Source: Epiperipatus broadwayi
Lineage: Eukaryota > Animalia > Onychophora
Length of the DNA stretch: 64,000 nt
Direction of reading: 5' to 3'
Assembly (NCBI GenBank): GCA_028023455.1
Contig: JAQFVV010000007.1
Location: forward strand, 6,572,001 to 6,636,000
Positions 1-58,265 of the stretch are shown here, one piece after another; position 1 is the stretch's first letter; every line of letters starts with the position of its first letter. Below the pieces are notes generated by a model, which was given only the letters and a program-made list of their open reading frames with translations, ran no database searches and had not been told where the DNA came from. Both the position numbers and the translations under genes were made by a program.

Positions 1-284
1 ACAGTATAAAAAGAAACAAACTAAAGCTTAGCTTTCTTTGCATGCAAATTCAGAAAGAATAAGCAAAAGTAAAAATGATTCTAAAATTGTAATAAATATT
101 TTAATAATATTGATGATAATGAATGATTTATGATTTAGAAGCTCGCAACATTTTTTTTTTTTTGCTTTTACCAACTCTATGCCACTTTTTGTTAGTAAGT
201 AAAAGATGCCAGATAATAGTTCTAATAAATCTCTATCCTCTGCTGTCTTATCCAATATCAGATTACTTTCAGATGTATAGATTT

Positions 285-412
285 TATCAGTGAGGAGCTT
301 TGGATTTTAGAACAGTGCACATGGAACTTTAAAATCGAATGCATTGTCACAACCTCAAAGTTCTCCACCAATGAAAGCCATGAGGTTGAAACTAATCTGG
401 GGATATGAGATA
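285..412. mobile_element. Old fragments of repeat family A (HHR-bearing arm), both orientations
   Basis: atcagtgaggagctttggatttt matches the minus arm. atgaaagccatgaggttgaaactaatctggggatat matches the sense HHR region of the copies at 21.6, 35.1 and 56.7 kb. Confidence 0.6.
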
Positions 413-999
413 GAACAGCAAAAGAAAGGAATCATGGTTGCCATTAAAACAGCAACATGTAAGCTAAAGTCATGTGATACTTTATTGATTTAGGCTCACA
501 AGAAGTTTAAGCAATAGAAATAACGGAAGGGTCATGAGGTCACTGGCATTGAGCTTCAAAATCTGCCAATCTTCCCCTGCATCAAATCATATAATAGCAT
601 TTATTATACATTTCTTTTTTACTATGCAGTAATTTTTTATTGCAATGTAAAAAGTGAATAAAGAAGTGATTTAAATATTATTCTATGGTCATAGACAATC
701 AACACATAAAGGATAAAAAAGTAAAGAAAAACTATAATGCAAGCAATACATAGGAGCATATTAATGATGTTGCCTTTAAAGAAAAATAACAGAAATAACT
801 TGAAAAGATGTTGAAAAGCAGAAAAACAGCTTTAAAAGGAAATATGGTCTATTAATTAATTACTGATTAATTGTAATTATTATAGTCCACTTTTCTAAAG
901 TACAATTCATATAAATTGTTACGTTTTTATTTACTATTGTAAAACTCACTCCATTTACCACTTTGATATCATTCACCTCAGATATATAGTAATGATCAT

Positions 1000-5350: not shown

Positions 5351-5379
5351 AATCTTAATATAAATTGAGTACTGATTAT

Positions 5380-5560: not shown

Positions 5561-5759
5561 AGTTCATTATATACATTATATTTCTAATTAAATATTTATA
5601 TATTAGAATATTAAAAGTTGAAGATGAATGCTAATGTTTATAGTTATCATATGGCTCTATCACATGACTTCAACTTACTCAATATATATAGTTCACAGCA
5701 AACTTGTAGATAATATCATTAAAGTTTATCTTATTGTTTCAAATTTGAAATATTAAATT

Positions 5760-7640: not shown

Positions 7641-10600
7641 ATTTTTCTAAAATCACAAACTAAAATGTCTTTGTTTAAAAGAAATAAAATTATTACTAGT
7701 TACACCAAGTTAAAAAAAAGATAAAATTTTAAAATAAAAATTTATTCAATAGACAGTGAAGGTCCACTATGCTGGAAAGATTATAAAATAACTTCATTAC
7801 AGATTTTCAGCTCAGCACTGTTTTCGATCCAGCCGGTTATATTCATAGCACTAAAATACGTATATAGAAGAGAGAACTTATAGGTTAATTAGTATGTAAG
7901 TTTATGAATTTAAACATACCACTTACGAGATAATGCAACGCACGAGTCTTTTTTTATTTATCGCGTGGGTATTATTTGCACTAACCACGCAACTTTGATA
8001 TAAGTTTATTTATTATTTATAATGAAGGAAATCATCAAACTCATTTAGAAGCCAAATACGTTATAATAAGGCGTATAATGACAGCTGACTGTATCGCCTA
8101 CTCATTTGTATGATTTTTCAAACCTTGATAAGTTGTATATGCACTATTTACTGATCGAATTAATATTAATTTAACTTTTATGTTATGCAAATAAAAAACT
8201 ATTAACTACTAGGTTGAATGATTAAATAAATATCTACAAGACTAAATCATCATTAAAAACTTTTTAGCAGAAATAATTTTATAGCAAATAAAACATTTAA
8301 ACCAAATCCGTACATTTTTTTTATTTAACAAATTGACATACAGTATACAGAACATGATGTGACTTCTTAGGTCAAAGTTGATAAAATCTGACAAAGAATA
8401 AAAAGAAAAAGATTTTGTCGATGTTTACTTAATATTACATTTACGGGTCTTTGAGATAATACGAAGTAGAAAATTTGATTGTGTGGCCATTTTATAAATG
8501 TTTTAGAATCACCATCTTTAATGTATAAAAACTTAAATTTATCTTTTAATTTGAGTTCATCTAATTCTTAAAATTCATGAAAAATTAATAGTTAAGAGAT
8601 CAGCGATTCTCATTTTAACAAACCTCTCTAGCAATTAATTTGTTAAATATGAAATTATTCAAAACCATCTTATCAGTTGAAGAACCGAGGAATAAATAAT
8701 AATAAACTTTAATTTTTACATCCAACTGTTAAAACTAATTTGCATAACTAATGACTGAGATGGAAAAAAGTTTTAATACAACTGGAATTGATAGCAAAAA
8801 CATTTAAATTAAATTGCTTATGCAAACCAAATAAAACAAAAATAAAATGCTAATACTCGTAGACAATAAATATCAATAAGTACAGAACAACAACTATATG
8901 CTGTTATATGTAATATTAAAATTTTATTGATGTTTTTATATATTACATTTTCATGGCTGAATGAAGTAAATAGGGGAAACAAGCCCCCCCCCCCAATCAT
9001 CATTTAATCTTTTCCCAGTCACTAAAAACTAACTATAGGCTAAGCACCTATGACATAACATTCAGTCATCTGATCAACTCAGATTACTACAAACTTGCAG
9101 CTAATGATAATTACATATCCATTTTCTGATCCTTGTTGCAATGGATTTTAAATTGATTAGTGTCAAACTACCATAAATTTTCAAAGTTCATCTGTTCCAG
9201 ACTTGAAATTTTTGATTATTAGCATGGCAGCCAGATGCCCAAGCAACAATGACTTCTATTATATTGTGTGGAATTGTTATGATTTGGTATAGTATGGTAT
9301 TTTTGGCTTTACTACATACATTAGTAGCTCTTTATCAGTATTCCTCAAAGTAATAGTGTTACATAGAGGCACTCCAACCACAGACTATTTGAACATTTTG
9401 GATAAATCAAACTTGTTTCATAGTACTAACATTGTTTCAGCATATTCCTATTAATCTTCAAATTGTATAGATTACGTGATCAAATATTGGTTTAGATAAT
9501 GATGCCTCTTTTATGAACTCCAATCAAGTTTTTTTAAATATTACTGATTATTTGCATAACATTCATGAACAGTATATTAAAAGCCAATGTTATCAACTGA
9601 TCTCTCTTGCCCATAAGGTTCATTTTTATAATAATAATTTATGCTCTTGATATCATTCAGTATTATTGTGATTCTATCATTTGAAGAATAATATATAAAA
9701 TGTGGAACTTCATAATGAATATAAAGATCTGAAGGCAGAAGTTTAACAACTGACAAGAAAACTTAAAAATAATTGGTGAATTAAAATTCCAAAGTCATTC
9801 ACTAATTGTGGACATGCTAGATCTTTTTTAATGCACTAAAAACAACAAATAGATCTGACAAATGGCATCACAAGTCTATTAGATCCAGAAATGACACTTT
9901 CTTATATAATAGTAATAATAATTTGAACAAGGAAAAGGAATATGTTGATCTACCTTTTGAATAATGATACAGGAAATGAAATGACGACTTTCAATGATAT
10001 ACTCATTTTATCTACTTATTTGGATTTGGGATTTGGGTAAAGATATTTAGTGAAGTCAAAAGTTTTTTGTAATCATTTCTTTCGATGTATTGAATGATTG
10101 CTAGGAGGAAATGAATTGATGTCCTGTTGTTATTTAATGATAGAATAATATTGGCATATATTAACAAATTTAATATTATTTGTATACTCTAATGTGCAAT
10201 GGATGTGTTTATTTATACTCAAACATGCATCACAATGGAATCATTTCATTATTTGTTCATAAGTAGAATATTTTGTATTCTTAGACATACATGTGTGTGC
10301 ATATATGTATATGAATATTTAATATTTGTTACAATTTGGATATCTGGAAATTATAGACAATGCCATCTATATAGCGTATTACTTTTCCATCTGTTATTCA
10401 AAATCAGAATGATTTATTTATATGTAGAATACTTAACAGTCCTTTAATTTCATTTTTATTGTTTTTATTTTTAATTAATAAAATTATCTATCATTGTTTT
10501 AAGTTATTCCAGTGAAGTTATTTAATATTAAAATAGATCTAAAGTATTACATATTTGTATTTTCTTTTATTCACAGCCTCAGTCTTTAGGGTCCTTGTAT

Positions 10601-11082
10601 CCCAAGTTAGTCATAAGAAATCATGGCTAGTTTATATAGATGTTGGGATATATGTTTGTATTTTGACATTCAAATAAAGTAAAAATCAGATTTAAAGTCC
10701 ACTCAATTTATGATAATTATTATTTTACTGATGACCAGTGTGCTTGAGTACTCATTGGCCATAAGCATTGATGATCATCAGCATGTATAAGGATCCGAGC
10801 ATTAGTTTTTATAATAGATATTTTAGCAGTTAAATATGTGCATCCAAATGATTGTTTTATATTTTGCCCTAAGTTTGACAGTGGCTAGTTACCTTCTTTA
10901 AATTCAGTCACAATTGATGACTGTTGATTATTCTTGTTAAATGATGGTGATGTAACTTATTATTCGTGTAATTATTTCTTTTGTCCAGTGCTGATTCTCT
11001 GCTCTTATTTACTGTATTTTATTTATTCTATGCAGATTATGACATTTTTTATATCTTCATGCCACTTTCTTTTCATACCATT

Positions 11083-11085
<3 letters not shown>

Positions 11086-11113
<28 letters not shown>
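11086..11113. repeat. (TA)n microsatellite flanked by ttaca and tgtaa
   Basis: Directly visible; forms the palindrome ttaca(AT)n tgtaa. Confidence 0.85.
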
Positions 11114-11116
<3 letters not shown>

Positions 11117-14100
11117 AACCTCTGTCCTCTCCCTCCCCACCTTATACATCATTAACAGATTTAATAAGTATTAAACAAAATTTTAAAAAAATCATTAGCA
11201 ATTTGTAAATTTGAAATCATAAACATAACAAATGCATGTTCCTGTTGTACATTACCCATGACAACTGATCTTTTAATTTGTGTACTTATTAAAAAATATG
11301 TACTTATATAAGGCCCACTATTTCCATGATTCCAGATAACTATTTAAAGTTTTAGAACTAATGACAATGAATAAATGAGATTGCATATATAAAAATATAT
11401 AGATATAAGGATTATACACATATAAAGATTATCTTTTAGAAATTTTAAAAAAGTTTAATAGTGATGGCTTTCATTGGAAAAAGATAGTTGAAGTTAGAAT
11501 AGAATGATCTGTAACTTAAAAAAAAAAAAAATCTTGCTTTATAAAAGACTAGATGATAACATTGCAAAATTTCATTTAAACACACTAAAAATAGCGTATA
11601 ATATGGCAGTTATAAATGATTTATTTAGTTACTTCAAAGTTATGATAACCATACTTAATTCCTATTGGCTGGCAGTGATGATGATGATTACCATAGTAGT
11701 TTTCTTTATCTTATGTATATACATATAGGTTGTGTGTGCATAAAAATAACGCAAATTTTCACTGATTTTTTAAATAGGCAAATATGTTTTTACAATTTTA
11801 ATGTTTTAGAGATTATCTGGCTCAAGGACCTGCGGGCACCACTAATGACGTCTAAGATTTGCAAGATGCTCTTTGACATGAAAAATATTCTAAGATTTTC
11901 TATATCTATTTTAATAATTTTTTAAGACATTTTTTAAATGAATAGAAAAAAATATCAAATATCTGAAATTCAAAAATTAAAAAAAATAAAATATTATGAA
12001 AATAATATCATATATCATGTTAGTTCATAAACCATATTATGATTAATTCTTAATTATGTAATTTCACAATAAATACAGTTTTTTGTTTTTTGAAAATGAA
12101 AGTTTTATTTCATTTTTTTTATGTGTGTGGATAAATAATAAGAAATATTTCATTATATTAAAATATATTTAATATGTTTATATTCTTAAGTTGTAAATAA
12201 CCTTATATTTAAATCATCAACTCACCAAAAAAAAAAAAAAAAGAAAAGCCGGTCATAAGAAGTTATATTCTATACTCCTTATTATTCTTATAGAGAAGAA
12301 TGTATATAAGCTATAAATTATGGCCCGCAAAGATGGCAGATTTTAAATACTCTAATTAAGCATAGGAGAAGGTATGAGGCTTGAAAAATCGTGATTTTTT
12401 TGACGTTTTTAGCAAAAAATCTTGTGTAGCAATTGTTTTGGTTAAAGTAAATTTGGATTATTGATTGTAAAGAGTCAGTATTTTGTATTTGGTCAGATCA
12501 AAATAAGAATATTAAAGACATAATTAATGTAATTATTAAACTGAAATATTTTAAAGATCAAAATGGTTTTAAAATATTTTTTCATTACTAGCTAAGCTAG
12601 TAACATATAAGAATGGAATAAGGGGTCCTCATAGATAGATTGAGATGATGACATACTTGTATCAGAAATTTTGGGAATTTATTCCAATTAAATTTGAGAT
12701 TGGAATTACATACTATTTTAACTGATTTTAATTACAAAATGAATAAAACCAAAGTTTTATGAATGAATTTAACTGGTTGAAATACTTGTGAATTTTACTG
12801 ATGTGAGGTTAAATTTTTGAACTCTACCTATAGAAATAATGGTGATGTGATGTATAGTATTTATTTGACTTAAGAGTCCCCTAGTGTAAGGTTGAGTAAT
12901 CAATGAATTCTAGATACTAATGCTATTATATCCACACTTCTAGACTATTTTGTCAGTTGAAATCTTGGGATCCAGTGCATCTATATTTTTCAGAAATCAT
13001 AATTACTAACCAATCATTGGATTGTTAGTTTTAATCTATAAAGCTAGATTATCCAATCTTAAGTAATTCAAAAGCTAAATTAAAAGAAAAATGTGTTTGA
13101 GAGCAGTACTAATAGCACAGGAGTCATGCACATCTTCATCATTAATGCTTAGAGCACATGCATTGGATCAAAGCAATGCAAGGTGGCTTCTTTGACATAC
13201 TTGAAAAATACATTGGTATACAATGATGTAAAAACACCAAATAATAACATCATCATTAAGATTATCAATTAGTGATAAAATTAAAATATGTAACAAACAT
13301 TCGATTCAAATTATTTTTTCATTGAAAAAAGTCAAAATCTTTAGATAGGCTTTACAAACTGTCACTATGGGCCATCTTTGCTCTATAGGCTGTGCTTTAA
13401 GTAGCTCTTATGTAAAGGATTAAGAGATGTCAATTACATTTATAAAGTGCATTAATTCCAGCTTTCAATCCTAATCTTCACTGAGGAAGGAAAATGCCAG
13501 AAACTGGTTGGTCTGGAGATGAGAATTTTATTGTACCATAATATACAAAATCCATTGACTACTCAAATTTACATGATGCAGCTGATTTTGGAATAGAATG
13601 AAAACAACTGCTCTTAGAATTATATGAGTAAACATAGGAAAGCTCATGTGATATTAATGCTATATGAATTTGTTCTTAGTATCAAGCTAACAGTTTGAAA
13701 CAGATTGCTCTGTAATAAAGCATATGTTAAAGTGAAAGTCATGTGATATATTATTGATATAAAATCAAGGAAAATGTCTGGACTGTGTCTGTTAATTCAA
13801 AAACTTAAAAGGATGAGCAAAAAACTTTACAAAATACCTCGTGTATTTTGGATATCATTGTTAATGTCTTTATTACAGTTTAAGACTGAGATCTACATTA
13901 AGGTGATAAAATAAATTTTTTAAGCAGAAGACAAATTATCACTGATGATGATGAAGTGATGATAAATAGTCATTGATTAGTCATACTACCTCTTAGTTTT
14001 TCTATCTTTCTTTGCACAAAAGATTAAGCACATCAAACAAGTCTGAACACATTATTAAGATATATTCAAAAATGGAAATAAAGGAAGGTCATTATGCTGT

Positions 14101-14319
14101 TTCTTTTTCATATGAATTGTAAAATAAATCAACAAAAATATCGTATATAATAGTACTTTGTGTAATAATAGGTTAATGTTTAAAATAGATATTCAACATT
14201 TGGTAAGGGCATAAAATCATGTGCCCAAAAATTTTTTTTTATGAATAATTATTACTATATATATATATTATACCTGTTATATATGATATTTTTGTTATTA
14301 TTTTTTATTATTTATATAT

Positions 14320-14501
14320 TGCTTACAATAACTCCCCTCATATACACTTTAATGCAAATTTTTTAAAAATTATTCCTTTATTTGCCTGACAGTTTTGACT
14401 GTCCTGCAGTCTTCATCAGAGCTACAATATTGAATGATATAAACATATAATGATTACTTCATATACATATAAAAATATATATGGGGGAGTTATTGTAAGC
14501 A
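14320..14501. mobile_element. 182-bp TIR element (TG...CA, ATAT flanks) with an internal HHR relic
   Basis: TIR tgcttacaataactcccc / ggggagttattgtaagca, with atat on both sides. Minus strand 14384-14423 reads CTGATGA a GACTG cagga CAGTC aaaa ctg tc. Confidence 0.8.
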
Positions 14502-15307
14502 ATATATATGAATATATGAAGAAATGCAAAGAAAGGAAAAGGAGAAAAATAATATTTTTTATTACTACAATAATTCACAAGTTAGATTCTCAAAAAATAA
14601 TTTAAACACTCTTGTAAATAACATCCATCTTTTCTGTTATATGATCATGTATTTTGTCATCTGGCAAAAACAGATTAGCATTGACATAAAAAAAAAGGTG
14701 GGCATTATTTACAAGTGTATTTAAATGAGTCTTTGAAAATGAACTTGTGAATTATCTTAGTAATGTTTTCAAATTTGTTAGTTCTGTAAATCAAGTTATA
14801 TTTTTAACATTACATATTTAATAAACTAAAATTACTTACATGTTTATTAAAATCATATATTGATGAATCAAGGTGCAGTATTGAAAAAGGATTAAAAAAG
14901 CATGAATTATTATATAGGCATGTAAAAAGTAAAAATAATAATGATTTAATATCTGCTTCAGTTTTCTTGGATCATGAAAGACCATGTAAATATAAATTTA
15001 AGTTTGAAATTGAAAATGTATGATTCTTCAGGAAGAGAGAAACCATAATAAATGAAAAATTGAGGAGGCAATTTTAATAAATAGTAATAAAATAAATATA
15101 ATTAATAGACAAGCTGCTAACATTAAAATTTGGTATTCATAGGATTTGAGTTGATGACATTTGCTTCTGTTTTTGTAAAATTTTGGATTTAATGGCAGTT
15201 GGGGCAGGTTAAGAAATTAATGGGAAATACTTCTATGGTTTAAAAGACTGTATATAATAGTTAATTATCATTATATATATTATTTTTATTATTATATATA
15301 TATATAT

Positions 15308-17565
15308 TGTAACGATCCGGAGAATGAGACTTACCGTAATCTGCACTACGGGGCGCCATCTAGGCATTTGAACCTAGAAAAATTTATAAAGTAGGCAGAT
15401 ACGTAAGTCAAAAAAAAAAAAAATTTTTTTTTTTCCTTTTTTTTTTTTTTGATTCCGGTCGTTAGCCCATGTCACTAGCTCAGTGGAATAGCAGAGATTT
15501 AATAATATCATTTACTAGGATATAAAAGAATAAAGTAAGCCACTGCCAGTAATTCACATACAAACATTTATTTATGCACATATATATAAGGTTTAAAATT
15601 ACTTTAGTGATTTACATTTAATTTAACATTTAACATTATTTTTTTTTACTTTGATTTTACTTTAATTTACATTGCATTACTATTATATTATAAATTTACA
15701 TTTTTAATCAAGTTCGCACAGATGGGATTATATTAACCTGTTTAATATGTTGCTATAGATCGGTTACATAGATTTCAACGGTCAAAAACATTTCAAAGTA
15801 AACATAAACGATCAAAATACAAAGTTATTGATTACTGACAATTGCAGAGGGAAATATAAGAAACCCTCTAGTATTCATCGTAAGATACCTGCATCGTCAC
15901 CAATAACTTAAAAGACATCCGAATAAATACCTTTTAGATACTCACCGTAAGGTATCAGTATTTGTCGAATGTCTATATATTTTGATCAAATATGAAAACG
16001 CAAACATATTTAACCGATAGCCAATCTATGCAAGCGTCTATAAACAACTTAAATTTAATAGTTTTATAGGCTCGAGCCTGAATATACTATATAGATTTGC
16101 ATTCGAAAATAAAATATTCTATCCCTATTTAACCCTAGGCAACACATTTCGCAATCAACCGGCGCCAATCCATCTGATACATTCATGTATTCAATGTAGC
16201 ATGATACGACAACACAATTATATTGTCAGGAATGTACATCTGAACAATATGAAGAAAGAAAAACGACATTGACTCTCCACCCACAGGAATGTGACATCTG
16301 TGGGCAAGTAGATCAATAAACTAAAAACTCCATAGGAATGGGCTGCGGTCTTCTGCCGACTTACAAACCCATCCATAGGCAAACAGAGGGTGTGTGGCGT
16401 ATTTTATAATCCTGCCCGTAGCGGATCTCATGCTACACCTACTAATTACATAAATATATCCAATCCATTGAACCAATTCAACCACGAAATGAACAACCCA
16501 AGATTACCCTCCCTTAATTATCTTTACAAATCGATACAGCCATTCACGCCCGACTCAAGTTTAACATTTTTTTATAATTTATTTAACGGAAAACAGAAAT
16601 CATAACAACTTAAAGAACAAAATTAAATAAATAAATAAATAAATGGAAATGATTTTACAAATTAAATACATTAAATAAAATTATAACCAATTAATAAATA
16701 TTGTTGGTCAGATAGAATAATATTAAAATCATTTTAAATATGAAAAGTTTTTAATTTACTGTTCATAAATTTTAAAGTTCTTACGGTTATTGAAATAGTT
16801 CATCCTATTATATTCCTGGCCGTTTAAACGTGAATTCCCACGTCGTCCGAAGATTAGTATCCGGTTGATTTATTTATTTATCCTTTGGAGATTTTGTTTT
16901 TCGTGTAGTTGGTCCTCATTGTATAAACGATGGCCCATTTTTTTCTCTTTCTTAGCAGAACTGAAGGGATTGAAGCTGTGCGTCTTTTTCAATCCCCCCA
17001 GCGCTAACACCTAGCTGTTACATCGTCAATAATCAATCAATTTCCAGTCACTCACTAACTATGCTTTCCAAAACTTGTCCTTTTTATATTTTTGTCAAAG
17101 GATTGAATTAACATTGCGTCATGGATGTAATGATCCTTTCGCTGAGGTCCGATTTCCCAAATGGATTTCTTTCATTGGCTAATCCGTTTCTATTGTTTTC
17201 TTTCTATCTGACTGAAGTTATTTCATTTAAATGCTCAAGGCTGGTTTACATTTAACTAATTAACAATCATTTCCATTTCTAATTAATTACCCTGTTTTCC
17301 AAATCAAAAATATATTTAAAGACAGATTTAGAGATATAATTTTATCTCCAAATCTTTTTAAAATTTAGTTTTAAAAATACCTTTTTCTTTAATAAAAATT
17401 TTATTTTAATAATTTTTATTATCTGTGCGACTTAATATATAAGAGTTTAAGACGATATTTTAATTTCAATTTTTAATTTTTAAAGAAAGTTTTTAAATGC
17501 GAACTTTTTATTTTAACTTGTTTAATAATTATATATAAAAAAACAATGTAACGAACGTCTGTGCA
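15308..17565. mobile_element. 2.26-kb TG...CA insertion in (TA)n with ATAT flanks; LTR-like or unclassified
   Basis: Starts tgtaacgatccgg, ends cgtctgtgca, with atat on both sides. Visibly richer in CpG than its flanks. No RT, integrase or transposase motif recognised. Confidence 0.55.
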
Positions 17566-18191
17566 ATATATATATATATATAACAATAAAAAAAATATAT
17601 ATATACACAGATATCTAGGTGGTACTCTATGTGATTTGGTCTGGAGGCAAAATAGTGGACTCTGGAGTTCAGGGTCCATGAACCATGGTTTCACTTTGTC
17701 ATCTCTATTGCTTAAAGTTCATATAAACTCCTGATCAATAAAATATTTTATTATTATTTTAATGATATACATATAATGTCTAGGTGCTCTGTAGTAATTC
17801 AGTATAGTGGTAAATTCAGAATCTCATAGTTAATGGGTCATGACCATACTGCATTACTTTCAGCAAGTTTATAAACTCCTAAGAAATAAACTGTTCAATT
17901 ACTTTTTTACAGTCAAGAACAGAAATTCCAAATAAAAATGTGAAAAAAATGCTGCCCTAATATCAAAAATCACTAAACATTGTTTAAAAACTACCATAAT
18001 AACATCAAAATTATGGAGTATGTAAATTTTTAATTTAACATTAAAATATATAAATGTAAAGAGTTTTCATTAGATAAAATTCAGTGACAATAAAAAAAGA
18101 AATAAATAATATAAAAATTAAAGAGTATAAAAACATACTCTACACAAATAATAATCTGTAAGTAATAAACAAAAAAAAAATTATTGTATTA

Positions 18192-18194
<3 letters not shown>

Positions 18195-18284
<90 letters not shown>

Positions 18285-18300
18285 CAACAACAACAACAAC
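18195..18300. repeat. Compound microsatellite (AAT)n(AAC)n
   Basis: Directly visible; explains the poly-Y/poly-C ORF 18140-18364. Confidence 0.95.
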
Positions 18301-18319
18301 ATTCTTCTAAGCATTTTAA

Positions 18320-18520
18320 ACCTGAAGAAGAGGGGAGAGTAATACCTCTCAAAATGTTGTGCATATACTAACCTGTTTGATGTGCTATTACTAACAGTTG
18401 AATGTATTTGAAATATTTAAATAAAGTTAAATTTTTCTAAAGACATTCAATACTCATATTAGATGATAGAAATAATCCAATGTATTAAAAATACAACTAG
18501 AACACCATCATCATAAACCT
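18320..18520 (+). mobile_element. Family C arm starting with a PLE-type HHR relic
   Basis: CTGAAGA agagg ggagagtaata cctct c aaaa tgttgtg at 18322-18360, then the same body as 7290-7470. Confidence 0.65.
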
Positions 18521-19289: not shown

Positions 19290-19680
19290 TTGGTACCAAT
19301 GTGGGCTTTGAGCATTCTATCTTCAGATTTTCAATGAAATGGATGGCTGAAGAGTTGTGGGGTGGAGCGGTTTGAGCTTGTCCATTAAAGAATGAAGATT
19401 GGCTATCTTAATATAAGATGAGCTTTGATTGGGTATATGTGTGGAGATGATAATCTAGAACAACTGACGAGTGCTGGTTTAGCTCAAATATGCATATTGG
19501 TGATTATTTGTCTTTTCAACATGTGTGTGATCAAGTGTATCAATAGTATGAAATAGCATGGATAGTTGAGGTTCATGTGAAAGTCTGAGTTTAAGTCCCC
19601 TATATATTACATATCAGAGTGCAGGTATAAAAAGCCTATACCATAGAAAAAAAATCATTTATTAAATATAAATGCTTTTA
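19290..19680 (+). mobile_element. Repeat family B copy (first of a tandem pair)
   Basis: gataatctagaacaa CTGACGA gtgctggtttagctc aaa tatgcata ttggtgattatt (core 19464-19470). Confidence 0.85.
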
Positions 19681-19759
19681 AGGACTGTACGTAAATGGAT
19701 TATGTCTTGTACATGAGAACTCAGAGTGACTTATAGTCAACATGGTTAGGATGAGAAGG

Positions 19760-20115
19760 TTGGCACTAATGTGGGTTTTGAGCATTCCATCAGATTTTCA
19801 ATGAAATGGATGGCTGAAGAGTTGTGGGTGGAGTGGTTTGAAGCCTGTCCATTAAAGTATGAAGATTGGCTGATTGTGTATATGTGTGTGGAGATGAGAA
19901 TGTGGACCAACTTACGAGTGCTGGTTTGGCACGAAATATACATATTGGTGATTATTTGTCTTTTTGACATGTGTGTGATCAAGTGTATCAGTAGTATGGG
20001 ATAGCATGGGTAATTGAGGGTCGTGTGAAAGTCTGAGTTCAAGTGCCCTATATACTACATATCAGCGTGCAGGTATGAAAAAATCTGTACTGTAGGAAAA
20101 AATTCATGTGTAATA
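19760..20115 (+). mobile_element. Repeat family B copy (second of a tandem pair)
   Basis: ggaccaa cttacga GTGCT ggttt GGCAC GAAA tatacata TTGGT gattatt (19905-19957), then gtcgtgtgaaagtctgagttcaagtgccc. Confidence 0.85.
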
Positions 20116-20689: not shown

Positions 20690-21030
20690 ATATAAATGAC
20701 TTTTTTAGAAAATTTCAAGCTTTATTTAAACTTCTCAAATACATTTAGCTGTTAGTAATAGCGCACAGGTTAGTATATAATATTTCAAGTGAGATTTGTT
20801 TTCCTTTCTTTTAGTATTGCTGGCCTGACCAGTGACAGTAATAATATGCAAATCGAACTTGGACCTTTAGATCCATGAATATTGAATTTAAGGTAATATT
20901 ATAACCAACTAAGCTACTCCGTCAAAGACTAACTTGTCTGCTCTTACCAACAATTGAATGTATTTATAAAGTTTCAATTTTTCTAAAGACATTTAACAAT
21001 TAATACTAGATGAAAAACATTGCACGATCA
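20690..21030. mobile_element. Family C foldback with a tRNA-like insert in the centre
   Basis: 20700-20800 is a minus arm and 20925-21030 a plus arm. Minus strand gtagcttagttggtt...ggtccaagttcgatt lies between them. Confidence 0.55.
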
Positions 21031-21047
21031 TTTCATATGCTTACACG

Positions 21048-21345
21048 TTAATAAGAGTACCAAACTCTCCATGCAGTAGTGTCATCATGTGCAAGACTTT
21101 GAAGTCAAACGGATGCAAAAATGTTTGTGCATAAAATCACTATATAGTTCCTACTCAACTAACATCCCAGATTAGTTTCTAGCTTGTAGCTTTCATGAGT
21201 AAAGAGCCTTAGATTTGGAAGCATGGCACCTTGATCTTAGGATCTAGTGCAACTCTCCAGAAAACCACCTTGTAGCTATTTGGTTACCTATAAAACAAGG
21301 AACCCAAAATGAAAACACCATAGTGTTTCCAATCCAAGCTTATTT
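21048..21345 (-). mobile_element. Family A single arm
   Basis: Clear homology to 21502-21740 and 56275-56500. Confidence 0.8.
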
Positions 21346-21501
21346 GCTTGTATTGCCATATAGATCTGAACTTATTTCAGCATCTATACATTTTGGTGTC
21401 TTTGTTTTTTAAAAACCAGTCACCATTATCCTATGTGCAGGATATGTATACTACTCATCAACATATCACATCATCACCATTTCATATACTTGCACAGGCT
21501 G

Positions 21502-22014
21502 TTAATAACAGTACCAAACTCTCCATACAGTAGTGCCACTAAGTGCAAGCCTTTGAAATCAATGGATGCAGGAAGATTTGTACTTAAAATTCCTATCTAG
21601 GGACTACACAACAAATATACCCAGACTAGTTTCTAGCTTGTGGCTTTCATCAGTGAAGAGCCTTGGATTTGGAAGCACTGCACCTTGATCTTAGGATCTA
21701 ATGCAAACTCCAACAGCCACCTTTTACCTATTTGGTTAATTATGGTGCTTTCATCTTGGGCTCCTAGCTTCATAGTTAACCAAATAAATAATAGATGGCT
21801 GCTGGAGGGTTGCATTAGATCCTAAAATCAAGATGCAGTGCTTCCAAATTCAAAGCTCCTTACTGATGAAAGCCATAAGCTAGAAACTAATATGAAGATG
21901 TTGGTTGAGTAGGCACTAGACAGGGATTTTATGCAGAAACCTTCCTGCATCCATTGATTTTAAAGGCTTGAATTTGGTGTTACTACTGTATGGAGAGTTT
22001 GATACTTTTATTAA
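21502..22014. mobile_element. Family A foldback (two inverted arms of about 235 bp)
   Basis: ttaataacagtaccaaactctccatacagtag ... ctactgtatggagagtttgatacttttattaa. HHR-like motif in each arm (minus core 21647-21653; plus core near 21862). Confidence 0.9.
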
Positions 22015-22379
22015 TATTAGATAAAGGGAGTAGTCCAGAAAATAATTACATCTATCCTTATCTGTAAACTTATTAATAGACACTTAATTTGATGTAAAAG
22101 TTCCAAAATGAATTTGTGCATCCATTTTGTATTTTCTTCTTGTTTGATAATTTACATTTGAAGGTTTTCTTTTCAAACTGTAACCAACTTATGACTGCAA
22201 GTTTAAATAATCTTGAATTAAAACATTTTTATTTAGCCCCCCCCCCCCCAATATTAGCACAATTGCATTTAAAAATCAAGAAGATATTAAGAATTTTAAT
22301 TCTGCTTCAAATTTTTTGTTGATTCTCTAAAGACTAGAAAATATATGTTTTAAAAATAGTAGAAAGATGTTTTTTTGAA

Positions 22380-27199: not shown

Positions 27200-27770
27200 T
27201 TTTTAGAATAATTTTTATTTTATTTTTCTAGCTGTTTCAACTGACTTGAGCCCTTCATCAGAGATATATAAATATTTTAGATTTTATTATATATGTCATA
27301 AGATATCAGTTTCAATCATAATACATTTAAATAGTTTTGTATGAACATTTAAAATGATTATAATTATATATAAACGTATCTTCCAACATATAAAACAAAT
27401 TTTAAATCTTATATTTTATATATAAAAAGCAAATAATTAATACCTATAAATTTAAACACAACTGTTCCTTAAAATTATATCGTGTGTTCTTAGTATAATT
27501 TTAAAAAATAGTTGTGTTTAAATTTGTTATTATTAGTTAATATTTATTTCTTTATATATATAAGGGTTACGGTATAAAATTTGTTTTGTATGTTGGAAAA
27601 TATATTTATTAAAAATTATAATCTTTATATATATATATATGTAAGTTATGTTGACATTAATATTTTATGGTATGTAATATCATAAAATATAAAATATTTA
27701 CAAATCTCTGATAAAATGAAAGTTCTAAGTCAGCTGAAACAGAAAATTAAAAAAAAACAACATTTTAAAG
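27200..27770. mobile_element. AT-rich foldback (arms about 260 bp) with HHR-like motifs at the outer ends
   Basis: Arms symmetric about 27485. Minus strand ctgatga agggctcaagtcagtt gaaa cagc ta (27228-27262) and plus strand ctgataa...aagtcagct gaaa cag (27708-27742). Confidence 0.7.
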
Positions 27771-29230: not shown

Positions 29231-30124
29231 ATGGATTGCATTTGTATCCCACAATGCTTATATAATGGTCAGAAAGAAACTAGGCATACTATGGTAGAGG
29301 GTACCATATGTAATGAGATTTATCTTTTGAAATGCTTAAATAAGACTCAGAAGGATATAACAGATTTATAGTTGTATAGACAATGTGTAAATATGATAAA
29401 AGAGGTGAAAAAGTCATTTATAAGTGTAGATAGTTTAAAGAGAAAGTCAGGAGAAATGGAGCAAATTATAGTTGAGAAAGATAGGATAGAGTATGTATTT
29501 AGTGACAAGAGATATGGATAAAAAATAAGTAGTGTGATAGAGATGGTTAGACAAAGAATAAGTAAGATAGAAGAAGAGGTAACAAAAACAAAATTAAAAT
29601 TATTAGAAATGAATCATAAAGAAGTAGATAAGGAAGTACAGAAGATGGAAGAGAATATTACGGATGAAGTAGGGAAAGTAAACTATGAGACAGAATGTGA
29701 AGATATAATTGCAAGGGAAAATAAAAACAGGTCTATAAGAATATGCCTTCCTGGAGCTAGAATTAGGGTTGTTACAGATAAGGTAAAGAAACAAGGGAGT
29801 AGAGATGTGCATATTATGGTAGGGACAAATAATTTGTCAGAGTCATTGGACAGAGTAATAAATGAGTACATAAAATTGATTAGTATTTTGAGTAAGATTA
29901 AAGAAAGACTAGGAATAGTTGGATTATTATCAAGATTTGACAATAGGCATATGTTAGATAGGGTATGGTCTATAAATGAAAGGTTGAAAAAATTGTGTGA
30001 GAGAAATGATGTTATGTTTGTGGAGGTATGGGATTTTTTTATTATTAAGAGGGAGTTATATAGTAAAAATGGATTGCACTTAGCAAAACTAGGAAGTGAT
30101 GTTTTAGGGAATTTGGATTTATAA
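29231..30124 (+). pseudogene. LINE ORF1: PHD-like Cys cluster, coiled coil, SGNH/GDSL esterase (2 in-frame stops)
   Basis: MDCICIPQC...TICNEIYLLKCLN...QC is in frame with ORF 29534-30124, which has CLPGARI, HIMVGTNNL and GLHLAKLGS (SGNH blocks). Confidence 0.8.
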
Positions 30125-34526: not shown

Positions 34527-34800
34527 GTTAAAACAGTAAAACTCTCTCCTGAACGTAGACCCACTCAGTTCCAACTATAGTAATCAATAGATGCTAAAAG
34601 GTTTTTGCCAAAATTCCTATCTAGTGCTTACTCATTCATTATCCCCAGAATTGTTCCTACCTTGTGACATACATCAGACTGGGATCACTGAATAAATAGA
34701 CACTAGATAAGGACTTGTATGGAAACCCTTGTAGCATCTATTGATTACTATGGTTTGCACTGAGTGGCACAACTGTATGTAGAGGGTTGCTATTGTTTCA
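34527..34800. mobile_element. Short family A foldback
   Basis: Arms of about 120-150 bp. The plus arm begins at about the predicted HHR cleavage site. Confidence 0.7.
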
Positions 34801-34929
34801 ACAGCTTGTGTAAGCATAAGAAATGGTGATCATGTGATGTTTAGTAGTTTAATACCACTTTTGACCAAAGAATGATGATGACTATAGTTATAAAAAAACA
34901 AAAACAAGATTTAGAGATACTAAACTGGG

Positions 34930-35271
34930 GTCAAAACTGTATGACCATAAAAGCAAATGAGTTTGGATTGAAAACATTTTTGTGTTTTCATTTTGCTTTA
35001 TGGTTGATTTAAAAGGTAAAAGGTGACTGCTGGAGGGTTGCACTGGATCCAAGATCAGGGTGCAGTGCTATCAGATTCTAGACTCCTCACTGATGAAGGC
35101 CACAAGCTAGAAACTAGTATGGGGATATTGGATGAGTAGGCACTAGATAGGGATTTTGGTGCAAAAACTTTCTAGATAGAGATTTTATGCACAAGCCTTC
35201 TGACAACCATTGATTACTCTAGCTTGCACTGAGTGGCACTACTGTATGGGGAGTTTTGCCTGTTTTAATAA
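34930..35271 (+). mobile_element. Family A sense arm with HHR motif
   Basis: tcctca CTGATGA aggc cacaa gcta GAAA ctag ta tgggga (35084-35125). Confidence 0.85.
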
Positions 35272-35779
35272 CAATTCAGAAAATGTAGTAATTGCCAAAG
35301 ATATTTTGTTTATTGTTCTTTATTAATATACAATTATTTGTAAAATTCTTTCCCCTTTTCATAATGTTATATCTCTTTTTGGTAAAAGTTCCTTCTTGGT
35401 AAGGTGAAAATAACAGCTTTTAATACTAACTCCCTATTCTTTATTAATAAATCTATTCTTTTATCCCATTACTTACCACTATAACACTCAACAATCCTCC
35501 TAACACAATCATCCCATCTTTTGTACAAATATACAGATATAAATTCTTTATCCAAATCTTTTGCATACCGTATTACCTTTCTCACCCATCTTGATTGATT
35601 ACAGTGAAACACTGCCCTCTATCAGGAATAAGTTCATTATGAGATTGATTTAACTACCATCTAGTAGCCACTGAGGAAAGATAATTTTACAAGATTCACA
35701 TAGATATTATCAAGAAATTCTGATTAACATATATTTATAAAAAAAGATTTGAAATACCAGACACTCTTAAACTGGAGCC

Positions 35780-40885: not shown

Positions 40886-41496
40886 ATTTATAATTACAAT
40901 AATTTGAGTTAAAGCATATAATTTTATAATTATATTACTATTTTCAGGTTATCTTTTAAACTATTAATACTTTAAGTTTTCTGATGTAATATAAGAATAT
41001 AGTTCTTTTTTTATTGCTTAAAATATACTTAATTAATTTTATTAAATTACATAACACTTTAGCTTTACACTTAAAAAAAGTTATTATGCAAAATACTGTA
41101 AACATCAAATGCACTTTCAATGTAAACTAAAGAAATATTTATAAGAAAAGTGATTTCCTATAATGCTCTGAGATAGAGAAATGGTTACTGCTAAATGGTA
41201 ACATTTATTCTACTTACAAATTTTAATATTTTTACTTTTATTTTATTTACTTCCTTTCTTTTTTATTTATACTTTCTTTTAATAACATATAAGTGAAACA
41301 AAGTATACAGATACAGAAAATATCATATCCTCACTATAATTAAAATAGCTATATGAAAAATGTCTTTACTTACAAATGAACAATCAAAGAATTTCAATTG
41401 TTTGAAGCCAGTCCTTAATGTTATTTTATCTCTGCCATGCACATATATAAAAATGTATGTCTTATGATCATCATTCATGCTTATAGAGTGAGCTGT

Positions 41497-41670
41497 TTAA
41501 CACAGAAGCAAAACTCTCCATACAGTAGTACCATTCAGTGCAAGCCAGAATAATCTATGGATGCAGGAAGGTTTGTGCGTAAAATCTCTATCTATACATA
41601 AACCTTTTTGTATCCATTGATTATTCAGAATCTTGCACTGAGTGGCACTACTATATGGAGAGTTTTGTAA
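41497..41670. mobile_element. Minimal family A foldback (terminal 80 bp of each arm, no HHR)
   Basis: aaactctccatacagtag... / ...ctactatatggagagtttt. Confidence 0.8.
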
Positions 41671-42149
41671 ATGTATATGTAATACAATAAAGAGAAATAA
41701 TCAAATGGTTTATCACTTGGGAATTTGAAAAAAGTTCAAGCTGAAAATGCCAGACCTGGGGCATATTCCATAGAATTTTAACTGCAGTCTGCTACATCAC
41801 ATGACTGACCAATACACATTGGTAATTAAAATACTAATATATACATTTTCATTCTATTTCTTCATCAAAAAATGAAATAAGATGTATATTTGTTAATATT
41901 TTACCCACTATTGTTTATGTTACAGATTTTTTGTAAAAATTAAAATATACATATACACACACCTCTAAAACACTATGAATATATTATTCACTAAATATTT
42001 GGGCTAGGGATAATATCTACCTTAATAAATGATTAGTAAAAGTTATTAATATATTTTCCATAAAATAATTGTATCAGAAGTTGTGAGTGCAAAAAATTTA
42101 AAACTTGTCAATTAAACTATAGTAATTTGCTATCTATATACATAAACTG

Positions 42150-43330: not shown

Positions 43331-44859
43331 TTTATTGATTTTATACAAATTCTGGCTACAGGAGAATGGTACCTGTAGTGGTTAAAAACTAAAGGCCACA
43401 TAATATATAGATTGTGAACTAGTTTCTGATCTATATGACTATATGAGCAAGATGACTTATATTAAAAACATTTATGTTTTTCCTGTTTGGACTGACAGTC
43501 TAATAATTAAAAAGAGAGATAAATGATGGCTGCAAAAAGGAAGGTCTATTAAGCCCTAAGGATTTAGATTCATAATCTTAAGATCCAAAGCTCCAACTAT
43601 GAAATTCATGAGCTTGAAACTAGTCTAGGAATTTTAGCATTGGACAGGCGTTTATTAAGCTATATCATATGGAATCTATTAATTATTAAAGTTTATAATT
43701 ATATGAAGTCAAGTGTTCAAACTAGGGGGACAGTGAACATCATTAGATAAATGAGGAGAGGCTGAGACAGGTTAGTGCCAGTGGGATAATTTGTGGTCAG
43801 CAAACTTCAGAAAAAAAAAGTTCTTTAAAAAAAATGCAGCTTTATTATAGCAATACTAGCTCACGAATGTGATAAATTATATTGTACCGCATAAGGAAGT
43901 GTTTGAGAAAAAAAAAAGAAGAAAAGAAAGAAGAACGCTATTGATAATCAAGATGCACTTAGAAATTGAGCGGAAATCTGAAAGCAATTCTAGCCTCGTA
44001 GGAAATACAAAGAAAAATGAAAAAAATTATATGGATTGGAAGAACGATAGTGAGAGAATATTTCATTTTAAATGCTATTCCATATTTCCTCCCAGCGATG
44101 CCATTATTAACCCTTCAAATGCTAAAGCGAAGAAAATCAATCCGAAAAATTGAATTAAATCAAAATGATTTCAAAACTACTTTGATTTTACAATAAATCA
44201 ATATTTGCATATTCATTTTAAATAAGATCAATTTAGAAGCAATGAAACACGTCAGAATTATAAAAGAAAAAATTATAAAAATAAATCGTTTTGAGACCAG
44301 AGTATGATTTTTGAGAGTTGTGTGTAGACATTAAGATGAAAGTTCTTATTTGATTTATTATATCGCAAATGGAAAATAAATCATAATTTTATTTTTGCTA
44401 AAAAAAAAGAAAAAAGAAGAAAAAACCGTGGGAAGGTAAATAAAATATTAGTTAAAAAAAAGTAACACGAATTAATATTTTCATTTTTACACTTATGCGC
44501 TTTGATCAAGAATGTACACTACATAATACGATATTCAAAATGTTTATAAGTTTTTTTGATAATTTTAAATGTTTATAAGTTAATAAAATGATAGTCATTT
44601 TACTTTTACGCACGCGCATGCATGTGGAATGTTTTATTATTACGAAGATTTTTATTAATATTTAACAATTATTGACTTTTTGCGTTCTAAAGTAATTTCT
44701 GGCAAAAAATAATAAACGGCAACGAAAGACATGTTTTTGCAACTTATTTTAAGCGCAATTCCTTATTTATTCATTCTACCACTATAGCCATAAATTTGAC
44801 AATCATTAATTATAAGGTTCATGGTTTGTGTTTATCTACATATACTTAAGCCAATAGAA

Positions 44860-51102: not shown

Positions 51103-51240
51103 TTATTAAACAGGCAAAACTCTCCATACAGTAGTGTTTGACAAAAAAAAAAAAAAACATAGCAAAAAAAAAAACAAAAACAGATGCACTAGATCCAGAT
51201 ACTAAATTCATCAATAATGAAAGTCATAAGCAAGAAATGA
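51103..51240. mobile_element. Family A fragments
   Basis: ttattaaacaggcaaaactctccatacagtagtg plus a decayed sense HHR piece. Confidence 0.65.
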
Positions 51241-51789
51241 GGATTGTGCAGCATTGGGTAGGAATTTACTAAGCATTACCATCTGAAAACTAATGATTAC
51301 TCAAGCTTACACTAGGTGGCAGATCTGTTATATAGGATAAACGAAAGACTGAAATTAAAGAAAAGATAAAATAAACTTCTACAAATAATCAATTCTAACT
51401 TTGACAATAGAACCCATTGGATGATATTATGATGCTGAAATAAATTTCAGGATGAAGTTAGGATTAAAAATATCTATTAAATTTTTTTTTTACCATAGTT
51501 TTAGAAAGCACAATTTATTTATTGTACCTTTACTTATGGGGATAAAATTTTTTGACATGTATAACTAACTACTCACAGAAATATTATGTATTGATCTTTG
51601 CATAATGGAATATAGTATGAAGATTATATATTTATTTAGTTAGTTAGTTCTATGAATTGTTTTAGGTAGCTTAACTATTAACAAAATATCACAAATGATC
51701 CTGTAGTAACTTCAATCAGGTGATAAATTCTTTAATAACATTATTAAGTATTTCAATTCTGCCTTTATAGCCATAAACTCACCAATCTA

Positions 51790-54950: not shown

Positions 54951-56274
54951 CAGAGGGTGCTAATAATCATGATTGCATATTATGATGACATTTTAATTAA
55001 TTACCTGCACTAAAGACTACTCTTAAACAGAGGAAAATCTCAAGAATTATTTAAGATTAAATAAGATGTTTTGAATTTTGTAAAAAAAAACCAAGGTGAA
55101 CAAAAATTGGCTTGAAAAGTTCACATGTACTTCAACTCAAAGGCACAGATATTGAAGCATAAGTGAGTAAAATTTATTATAAATAAAAAATGAAAGAATT
55201 GCATTATGAAGATGGATGTTATTTCAGATAAAGTGATGAATTTAGTTATTTAACATAATGGGAAATTCAAAAGACAAATAATTCAGATTTATAACAAATA
55301 CATTTTCATTCTGATGAAGTAGGAGATTTTAATTGAGATATACAAAAATATTTTATTCTAATCATGTGACATTTTTGAATTGTCAAGAGAAATTTTAAAA
55401 TTAAAACTGAAAAACAACTGAAATATGAAAATACTGTGAATAAATACAGATATGAAGACAAAAATAGAAAAGCAAATAGAATTATGAAATTTGTGAAAAT
55501 AGATGTGGCATTCAAATGAAGATACAGCTGTTGGAATATATTTTAAATAACAGAAAATATATTTTAAGACTGTTAATCGAGTCTCCTTAGAAAATGATCA
55601 TTGAATACTAAGATACAATATAGATATTAGAGGACAAAACAAAAACTATTAAAAGAAACACTATCAGTGATTGATAAATAAAAGGAATAATCAAATAGTT
55701 AGGAAGTTCAAACACTTACACAGAGGCTAAACTCTTCATACAGTAGTGCCACCCAGTGTAAGCCAGAGTAAAAAATGGTGATCATGTGAAGTTAAGTTCA
55801 AGCACTAGTAGTGTTTCAGAATAGGGTTGGCCCAAGTACCTTAGGCTTCAAAATCTGACACTATCATTACATCAAACCATCCAGGGAATTCCTAGATTTC
55901 AGAAATATTCAAATAAATTTATATCAATCATTTTAAAATATGTATGAAAGCTCAGATTTGACTGAGACTAGTAAGAAGACATTGATTCTGTATTAAATTC
56001 AGCTTCTTAGATGGCACATATTACAAAATGGAGCAATTTGACAGTACATTTTTAACTCTGACAAGGCAATATATGAAGAAAAAATTATTTTCTTAGAAAA
56101 AAATGAATATCTGGAATTTTGTAAAATGATATAAAAGAAAGTAAATGATGATACATAAAAATATATAACTATGAATTGGAAAAAAAAAGGCTATAGAAAA
56201 AAATAAAAACTATAAAGAATAAACCACTAAACATCACATGATTACCTCCTCTTATGCTAGCACATAACTGTTAG

Positions 56275-56817
56275 TTATTAACAGGCAAAACTCTCCATAC
56301 AGTAGTGCCACCCTGTGCCAGTCAGAGTAATCAATGGATTCCAGAAGGCTTGTGCATAAAATTTCTATCTACTCATCCAATATCCCTAGACTAGTTTCTG
56401 GATTATGGCCTTCGTCAGTGAGAAGCCTTAGATCTGAGAGCATTGCACCTAGATATTAGGATCTAATGCAACCCTCCAGCAGCCACTTTTTATCTCTACT
56501 TAACTACAAAACTATATAAGCTATTGAGCTTAGATTGAAAATATTATTGTGTTTTCAATTTCATTCTCATAGCTTTGTAGTTAAGTAGAGATAAAAGGTG
56601 GCTGCTGGAGGGTTGCATTAGATCCTAAGATCTAGGTGCAGTGCTCTCAGATACAAGGCTCCTCACTGACAAAGGCCACAAGCCAGAAACTAGTCTGGGG
56701 ATATTGGATGAGTAGGCACTAGATGGGGATTTTATGCACAAGCTTTCTGTCATCCATTGATTACTCTGGTTGCCACAGGGTGGCACTACTATATGGAGAG
56801 TTTTGTCTGTTTAATAA
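56275..56817. mobile_element. Best-preserved family A foldback (arms about 250 bp, two HHR motifs)
   Basis: Near-complete inverted repeat. Plus HHR 56660-56701 tcctca ctgacaa aggc cacaa gcca GAAA ctag tc tgggga; minus HHR core ctgacga at 56412-56418. Confidence 0.92.
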
Positions 56818-56959
56818 TTCTCAAGGATAATTGAGCATTTTGATATAACAATAAGGAGGCAATTATTATTAAAAAATGATGACATTATGAAGAGTCAATT
56901 TTGTAACTAATTATATATTAATATAAAATAAGAAAACAAACTAGCCCTCTACAATTACA

Positions 56960-58265
56960 ATATCCTATGAATTGCTAATGAAGTAAAATATAAAATTAAA
57001 TCTATGCAGCTTGGAAAAACTTTAAAAAATGATGCAATTATTATTATACAGTTAAAAAAAAGCAAATAAAACAATTTAGAAATTGTTGATAGAACTCGAT
57101 ATTAAATGCCTAAATAACAAAGATATATCAAATGTTTAGAAAACTGTAGTAGAGAAATTAATATTTAAAAAGATAATATTAGAACTTAGAATTATATTTA
57201 TATCAGTTCTATATAAAATCTTTATTAAGATCATATACACAATACTTTGGCCTAAAACTAACAAAAAAAAATCCCCAACAAACTGGATTTAATAGTCTTT
57301 TTATTTCAGAAGATTGTGCTCAAATATTAAATGAAGTTACAAATAAAAACAATAAATATGAGCTGCCATTATGTATTGGATTTGTAGATTACAAGAAGGC
57401 ATTGGATGTATAAGAAGATACAATCCCAGATTATTCATACTCTAAAGAATATTTATAACAACAGTTATTAGGTTACATGTGATACTAAGAAGATGAACAT
57501 TGAGAAGAGTATACAACAATCTGATTATGATATATTTCCCCCCAAAAATTATAGCTGTTTTACATGAAGTAAATTGTGAATTAAAATAAAAAGTTAATGA
57601 ACTAAAAATATGTGGAAATTATTTAACTCTTCTCGAGTTTGCAGATAATGAGTGGTTTTTGCAAATAAACCACCATAACTTCAAGAAGCATTATGAGTTA
57701 ATGGGCAATGATTTTTCAGATAATTAAAAGAAAAACTACAAATACATTTGGTTAAATTACTAATGCAGATACAAAATAATTAATAAAATTTAATTATAGA
57801 ATTAGACTTAGATGGAATACTTTTGGTAGAAACTATTTTAATATCAAAATGTAATACAATATAAAAAGAATTTTTAAAAAAGTAGATGTATTTTATCAGT
57901 TCTTGAAAATGGATATGAGACTTGACTGCTTAATAAAAAACAGAGACTTCAGTTGATGCAATGAAATATGGAAAGATGTATGGAGAAAGTAGTAATGAGA
58001 AATCAAAAACAAAATACATGGATAAGAAAATGTGCCTCTGACATTACTGAATAATTTAGAGGCTAAAATGGAACTGGAGAAAAAAGGATAATGGATGGTT
58101 TTAAACTTATCCCCAAAGAATGTAAATGACTACTAAAGAAACTTTTGTGTAAGATGAATAGATGGCATAAGAAAATTTGCTGGAAAGTTAAAGAAGAAAA
58201 GCTGTGGGTAAAAAAAAGACACAAAAACAATGAATTTTGAAAAAGCTTTACTCTTCAACATAATG
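56960..58265 (+). mobile_element. Decayed RTE LINE RT and C-terminal region
   Basis: ELPLCIGFVDYKKA, LEFADN (cf. LRFADD), GWNTFGR, and a Q*NMERCM-like segment. Confidence 0.75.

Follow-up and report, generated by a model that had tools for sequence, protein, structure and literature searches.

A foldback repeat with hammerhead-like motifs in Epiperipatus broadwayi as the probable insertion footprint of a non-coding Penelope-type retroelement

The foldback repeat at positions 56275-56817 of the window (the whole 64,000-nucleotide stretch of Epiperipatus broadwayi contig JAQFVV010000007.1 analyzed here) belongs to a repeat family of very high copy number, family A. We infer, with a probability of about three in four, that family A is a non-coding, non-autonomous Penelope-type retroelement mobilized in trans by the enzyme of a Penelope-like element (PLE). 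A preliminary description of this DNA had presented family A as a foldback repeat. The foldback is real, and it is the footprint of a head-to-head insertion rather than the basic unit of the element. That unit is about 454 nt long and is made up of a tail (~36-60 nt), a spacer (~90 nt), a short hairpin and a ~250-nt body that ends in ...GGAGAGTTTTGCCTGTTTAATAA. The body carries a motif resembling a type I, dimer-type hammerhead ribozyme, and whether the motif has any part in the spread of the family is a separate question on which the likelihoods are lower.

Results

Anatomy of the foldback

The foldback measures 543 bp, with two arms of ~245 nt, 88-93% complementary and each bearing a hammerhead-like motif, around a centre of ~53 nt (Table 1). 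As the preliminary description had proposed, this arrangement was returned both as an inverted repeat and by BLAST of one arm against the window, where 56275-56515 and 56569-56817 align at 88%. Within it, the inner arm pair (56369-56515 and 56569-56715) is 93% complementary over 147 nt, and the outer pair (56280-56371 and 56720-56811) is 88% complementary over 92 nt. The surrounding DNA is AT-rich, the window having 27.7% G+C, and CpG is strongly depleted (observed/expected 0.26).

The 56-kb copy is itself degenerate, as the motifs of both arms deviate from the family consensus, and the right-arm core, in which G8 is changed to A, is expected to be inactive. In a computed fold, the RNA of this foldback forms a single hairpin (-405 kcal/mol, z = -39). 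Each strand of a foldback has only one motif in sense orientation, and the pair would not dimerize within one foldback transcript; as such a transcript folds into a hairpin of ~250 bp, its one sense motif would be buried and unable to fold. Dimer-type cleavage is conceivable only between separate RNAs or in tandem transcripts, such as one read from the minus strand at 21 kb.

An A-rich module of ~120 nt, which includes a tail-like part, is found at 56154-56274, 56853-56985 and 35272-35397 (reverse) with ~60-68% identity. It flanks the 56-kb foldback on the left and the right in the same orientation, and it also flanks the 35-kb unit. The module was considered as a target duplication of the 56-kb insertion, for which its copies are too diverged.

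No PLE coding remnant was found among the open reading frames tested in the window. The sole frame of at least 120 aa (29534-30124) has a weak match to a GDSL-like lipase (E = 1.3e-05, which does not reach Pfam's cutoff), and none of ten others matched a reverse transcriptase or a GIY-YIG domain.

Table 1. Family A features in the window (position 1 is the first letter of the window; motif boxes are given as RNA)
Feature	Position	Strand	Description
Tail	56215..56274	-	One-sided extension past the 3' terminus of the main (minus-strand sense) arm; common to the ends 21440-21501, 21012-21047, 34791-34850 and 41461-41496; absent at the opposite outer ends
Main arm	56275..56515	-	Minus-strand sense; 3' terminus = 56275
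Left-arm hammerhead-like motif	56383..56424	-	Box CUGACGA; C.U mismatch in stem II, C.A mismatch in stem I
Foldback centre	56516..56568	.	Holds the unit's own short hairpin
Inverted arm	56569..56817	+	Plus-strand sense; 3' terminus ~56817-56820; without tail
Right-arm hammerhead-like motif	56660..56701	+	Box CUGACAA (G8 to A)
Composite insertion	21012..22016	-	Direct repeats with 454-nt spacing, 87-91% identity; inverted arms 85%. On the minus strand: inverted arm (22014-21765), centre, arm with intact motif (21729-21502), tail (21501-21440), spacer (21439-21354), second unit (21353-21048), tail (21047-21012)
Hammerhead-like motif	21618..21659	-	Matches the full descriptor
Paralogous composite	34531..35310	+	Direct repeats with 469-nt spacing; short head-to-head pair (34531-34677 / 34679-34790), tail, spacer (34851-34943), full unit (34944-35271), diverged tail
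Hammerhead-like motif	35084..35125	+	Matches the full descriptor; GUA for GUC at the cleavage site
Short head-to-head insertion without motif	41461..41668	-	36-nt tail, then arms of ~98 and ~75 nt
Solo 5'-truncated copy	55716..55793	-	Last ~78 nt of the arm, without tail
Arm fragment	51103..51136	-	Terminal 34 nt of the arm
Old, decayed head-to-head copy	194..438	.	Junction at about arm position 46-58
Old, decayed copy	43515..43685	+	
Matches to GAAACTAGTCTGGGGA	0.39, 21.16, 21.62, 34.64, 35.11, 43.62, 56.38 and 56.69 kb		At most 3 mismatches

Insertion hallmarks of the copies in the window

Copies were recovered at every place named in the preliminary description (0.4, 21.2, 21.6, 21.9, 35.1, 43.6, 56.4 and 56.7 kb), and at 34.6 kb as well. 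Twelve of the 15 arm matches in the window reach the 3' terminus, that is, arm position 237 or beyond, and their 5' starts lie at arm positions 1, 1, 2, 4, 6, 21, 98, 111, 124, 152, 186 and 216. At the 56-, 21.5-, 34.5-, 41.5- and 0.3-kb copies an inverted, 5'-truncated copy sits directly at the 5' end with a different junction each time: central at 56 and 21.5 kb, ~96/128 at 34.6 kb, ~152/175 at 41.5 kb and ~46/58 at 0.3 kb. The fragment at 51103-51136 adjoins an A-run and an old, weakly matching arm piece (51182-51328), and 51103-51328 may represent one more decayed insertion of the head-to-head kind.

Beyond the terminus TTA(W)TAA, a tail is found on one side of the copies (56L, 21.0L, 21.5L, 34.5R and 41.5L) and never at the opposite outer end; in all 4 of 4 head-to-head insertions it is restricted to one outer end. 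Its length is 36 nt at the 21.0- and 41.5-kb copies and at least 54 nt at the 56-kb copy, within an overall range of 36-60 nt. Part of the tail could pair with the subterminal ~30 nt of the arm (21455-21595 and 34700-34845), to which it is complementary, giving a hairpin whose loop would be the terminal ~37 nt; the arm-tail pairing appeared in two of three folds, with energies no better than those of shuffles. Tail plus spacer was also considered as a decayed inverted arm, for which the local alignment is not significant (z about 0-1).

Two loci contain head-to-tail tandems, and the composites at 21.0-22.0 and 34.5-35.3 kb both read inverted arm, arm, tail, ~90-nt spacer, short hairpin, arm, tail. 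The spacers of the two loci are homologous (z = 11 alone and z = 23 with the tail). Tandem Repeats Finder detected nothing here, the copies being too diverged.

The solo copy is flanked by a 12-nt direct repeat (11/12 positions; 55704-55715 and 55794-55805), for which we estimate a chance of ~0.004, given that one repeat copy abuts the terminus. The 5' part of this copy resembles tail sequence. A candidate 13-nt duplication (12/13; 20999-21011 and 22010-22022) surrounds the 21-kb composite and a candidate 10-nt duplication (9/10; 41451-41460 and 41669-41678) the 41.5-kb copy. These two are individually weak in AT-rich DNA, as ~5% of cases in a null trial reached 13 or more; each of them leaves a tail of exactly 36 nt.

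These features bear on how the family moves. Long terminal inverted repeats are what a foldback MITE moved by a DNA transposase (with a TA, TTA or TTAA target) would have, its hammerhead-like string then being coincidental. Such an element would also account for the short derivatives at 34.5 and 41.5 kb that keep both termini and for the TTA(W)TAA at every arm end in AT-rich DNA, where a short palindromic target duplication is possible by eye. However, the tail is one-sided, the tandems include a spacer, and the junctions are variable and asymmetric. Moreover, a one-ended 78-nt copy carries a 12-nt duplication, the candidate duplications of 10, 12 and 13 nt are not of constant length, conservation of the arm terminus is lowest in its outermost ~12 nt, and the motif has a chance expectation of only 0.0056 per 64 kb. 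We therefore regard a MITE as very unlikely. The preliminary description had set fixed MITE-type terminal repeats and target duplications against its own reading; long inverted repeats are indeed present, but duplications of one fixed length are not.

Less likely still is a SINE-like element mobilized by a LINE rather than by a PLE. The copies are short, non-coding and 5'-truncated with variable target duplications, as those of a SINE would be, but we found neither a poly(A) or simple-repeat 3' tail nor a tRNA-like part, and head-to-head arms with a one-sided tail have been described as PLE-specific (PMC8557442, PMC11167929). Taken together, the truncation, the variable junctions, the tandems, the one-sided tail and the duplications of 10-13 bp favor a Penelope-type element, in line with the earlier proposal of a protein-free PLE parasite that annotation would call a MITE.

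The hammerhead-like motif

An alignment of nine arms gives the consensus UCCUCA-CUGAUGA-A-GGC-CACAA-GCC-A-GAAA-CUAGUC/UGGGGA (the slash marks the predicted cleavage site), which agrees with the consensus first proposed. With up to 3 mismatches, GAAACTAGTCTGGGGA occurs 8 times in the window where 0.27 occurrences are expected. The pattern CTGATGA-N(8-20)-GAAAC occurs 4 times against 0.10 expected in the window, and this search picked up the 21.9-kb copy. One of these four matches, at 27234-27261, is without stems and was set aside as chance.

We built a full descriptor that calls for the box CUGANGA, three or more pairs in stem II (with no more than one position left unpaired on either side at the base of this stem), GAAA, a helix III that is self-complementary and ends in U, H17, and at least 5 of 6 pairs in stem I. 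Only the 35.1- and 21.6-kb copies match it, and 0.0056 matches are expected per 64 kb (7 in 1260 simulated windows of Markov-1 sequence of the same composition, both strands). With pairing at 10.1-11.1 required, the resulting strict descriptor matches no copy in the window.

The core box C3-U4-G5-A6-N7-G8-A9 is present in the consensus and in the 21.6-, 21.9-, 35.1- and 56.4-kb copies. The 34.6-kb copy keeps CUGAUG and has U at A9, and in the downstream motif of the 21-kb locus G5 is changed to C. G12-A13-A14, A15.1-U16.1 and H17 are found as GAAA-CUAG-U-C/U, the A15.1-U16.1 pair being kept in all nine copies. The family consensus and old copies still have the two core boxes, A15.1-U16.1, the GUC site and the palindrome. 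The G10.1-C11.1 pair, on the other hand, is absent: seven of the nine copies have A.A in its place and two old copies (0.4 and 43.6 kb) have A-U, as the preliminary description had cautioned. Stem II has 3 pairs only, and helix I has 6 bp. That CUGAUGA might be a mere CpG-decay product of CTGACGA was considered; position 7 is free in hammerheads, so such decay has no bearing on the motif, and the box CUGACGA of the left arm at 56 kb is likewise permitted.

Among the nine related copies in the window, 76% of helix I/II cells are paired, versus 18-44% in slid registers. Covariation of stems I and II, which had been put forward as a check, is not significant among these copies, since 161 of 500 shuffles score at least as high. 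Only at pair 10.2-11.2 is a compensatory series present (A-U/G-U/G-C), and the G-rich 3' strand of stem I accepts C/U changes that are not compensated. A stem-neutral pattern run against metagenomes yielded 91 loci, none of them family A, and the copy set for covariation thus stayed at the window copies. When young and old copies are aligned together, 20 columns are invariant, and 13 of these lie in the motif or immediately next to it (arm positions 101-134). The young copies by themselves conserve the motif (0.79-0.86) no better than other segments of the arm (0.85-0.93).

Rfam returned no hammerhead at its gathering threshold or at E up to 10, a blank that carries no weight since the same search missed the canonical dimer-type motifs used as controls (L023, L048 and L080). 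In cofolding of 51-nt segments, the double-hammerhead fold is not the minimum-energy structure, an outcome that does not decide the matter because the core is non-canonical for nearest-neighbor energy models. Our reading of the motif as a putative hammerhead draws on the improbable match to the full motif and on its context, rather than on covariation.

Two further sets of sequences were noted along the way. Metagenome contigs L023 (319-360 and 1046-1087), L001 (2090-2263) and L080 contain canonical type I hammerheads with the same ACUAGUC helix III. Tandems of these metagenome hammerheads are 727 and 1373 nt apart, and in L001 two form a head-to-head pair at a distance of ~115 nt, with an additional U preceding helix II in the manner of published PLE motifs. 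In the window, an unrelated repeat, family B, forms a tandem pair at 19290-20115 with a period of ~470 nt and CUGACGAG...CGAAAU-type boxes; it gave no Rfam hammerhead match even at E up to 10.

Abundance beyond the window

Contigs of four public runs from three organisms, one labelled DNA and three labelled RNA, were compared with 55800-57300; one of these organisms is also the source of the DNA runs that best cover this stretch. Matches to the element at 85% identity or more were found in 2,774 to 18,510 contigs per run; the family thus has thousands of copies in contigs from several related species. The summed depth of the arms is ~10^4 times that of the unique flanks, which is a rough figure and not a copy number. 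Depth ratios in the RNA-labelled runs resemble those in the DNA run, and no RNA run was listed for the tandem locus at 21 kb.

At the positions where the 56-kb copy departs from the core, most of the family conforms to it, with G at 56671 (position 8) in 78-90% of the depth and T or C at 56670 (position 7). Tail depth is 6-44% of that of the adjacent terminus, which fits an optional extension. The two arms are linked by 285 distinct joints (15 listed and a further 270 counted) at many different coordinates. One common loose-end consensus, at 56511, agrees in 22 of 26 positions with the end of the spacer in the 21-kb locus. The spacer-hairpin junction therefore recurs at 56511, indicating that the tail-spacer-hairpin-body unit is common in the genome.

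In the short copy at 34.5 kb (34677-34681), the sense arm starts at C17/U1.1, at most 1 nt from the predicted cleavage site, and the inverted arm continues for another 30 nt across the core. Only one such case was seen, and there is no enrichment at the equivalent position, 56696, among the read joints listed.

Discussion

The insertions of family A closely resemble those described for PLEs. PLE insertions show strong 5' truncation and often partial tandems, an inverted 5'-truncated copy often lies directly at their 5' end, and a tail of 30-40 bp is often present at one end only (Craig et al. 2021, PMC8557442). In vitro, the tail of the lizard PLE PAc was traced in 2024 to two adjacent reverse-transcription start sites, and the PAc enzyme cuts and extends both target strands (PMC11167929). 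Truncation, partial tandems, the inverted copy and the optional one-end tail are all shared by family A, which differs in having no ORF and in the tail of at least 54 nt at the 56-kb copy.

Based on this published behavior of the PLE enzyme, a family A insertion may form as follows. The element RNA would be copied in trans by a PLE reverse transcriptase/GIY-YIG endonuclease that cuts both target strands, each end then priming cDNA synthesis on element RNA. The two cDNAs would meet head to head with their 3' ends outward, giving the foldback. Use of two alternative reverse-transcription start sites would leave a tail on one outer end only, and templates longer than the unit would produce head-to-tail partial tandems. 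Tandem transcripts would contain two sense motifs ~454 nt apart, which could use the ACUAGU palindrome to pair with each other and cleave at GUC/U.

The motif in the body may be the family A version of the type I, dimer-type hammerhead of PLE terminal repeats and animal retrozymes. Minimal dimer-type hammerheads occur in PLE terminal repeats in thousands of copies, mostly solitary or truncated, and opposite-strand pairs 100-700 bp apart are known from Schistosoma (Cervera & de la Pena 2014, PMC4209133). Like these, the family A motif is of type I with a very short palindromic helix III. The published PLE motifs are defined by features that include G10.1-C11.1 and a palindromic 15.2-16.2; they keep G10.1-C11.1, usually with one extra nucleotide on the 5' side only, and have a helix II of 6-8 bp (PMC4209133). 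In contrast, family A has an unpaired A on both sides (A.A), a helix II of 3 pairs and a helix I of 6 bp, and in its helix proportions it is nearer to canonical animal type I hammerheads than to the PLE motifs.

Animal non-LTR retrozymes are tandem units of 150-450 bp with type I hammerheads (Cervera & de la Pena 2020, PMC7229834), and they are proposed to be non-autonomous offshoots of PLE terminal repeats (Li et al. 2026 preprint, 10.64898/2026.07.22.740005). Retrozymes and family A alike are AT-rich, non-coding units with one type I hammerhead motif, arranged head-to-tail. Family A, however, forms partial dimers only and no long arrays, with ~454 nt its unit lies at the top of the retrozyme size range, and loop-loop tertiary contacts are not recognizable in it. 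Judged from sequence, family A appears to fit the picture of PLEs and retrozymes at every structural point tested, apart from G10.1-C11.1 and the lack of an autonomous partner in the window.

Mobilization by a PLE enzyme does not require that the motif be active. In the same Penelope-type retroelement, the motif could be a catalytically dead relic, or it could be kept for another role such as recognition by the reverse transcriptase, self-cleavage having no part in the spread of the family. We take this to be a serious alternative, with a likelihood somewhat short of even. In its favor, A.A has replaced A-U at 10.1/11.1 in the most prolific lineage; two of the three old copies have A-U. The short stem II, the lack of covariation among the window copies and the ordinary conservation of the motif among young copies also favor it. 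Furthermore, PAc insertion in vitro takes place without hammerhead cleavage and no RNA-seq reads of PAc end at the cleavage site (PMC11167929), and the minimal hammerheads of animal PLEs have low activity in vitro (PMC4209133). On the other side are the core features retained in the consensus and in old copies. In addition, a mismatch at the base of helix II need not abolish cleavage, as the axolotl HHR_Amex2, which like family A is mismatched there (U.U in the axolotl motif, A.A in family A), still cleaves, and better as a dimer (PMC7229834). On this balance, it is possible that master copies of family A cleave, but we would put the odds a little below even.

We consider a more far-reaching proposal unlikely, namely that A.A at the base of helix II is a still-active natural hammerhead variant, in which a purine-purine pair stands in for the near-universal G10.1-C11.1 at very high copy number in several related species, or that the foldbacks are sources of long hairpin RNA for small RNAs that police this and related ribozyme elements.

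Whatever the state of the motif, the window illustrates how a Penelope-type footprint of head-to-head arms, one-sided tail and partial tandem, all within a single stretch of DNA, can pass for a foldback MITE. Repeat annotation of the source genome and its relatives will accordingly misfile family A, despite its very high copy number. If the A.A variant cleaves, it would be a natural data point on what change is tolerated around the hammerhead core. If it does not, family A would support the view that PLE-type elements may spread without ribozyme cleavage.
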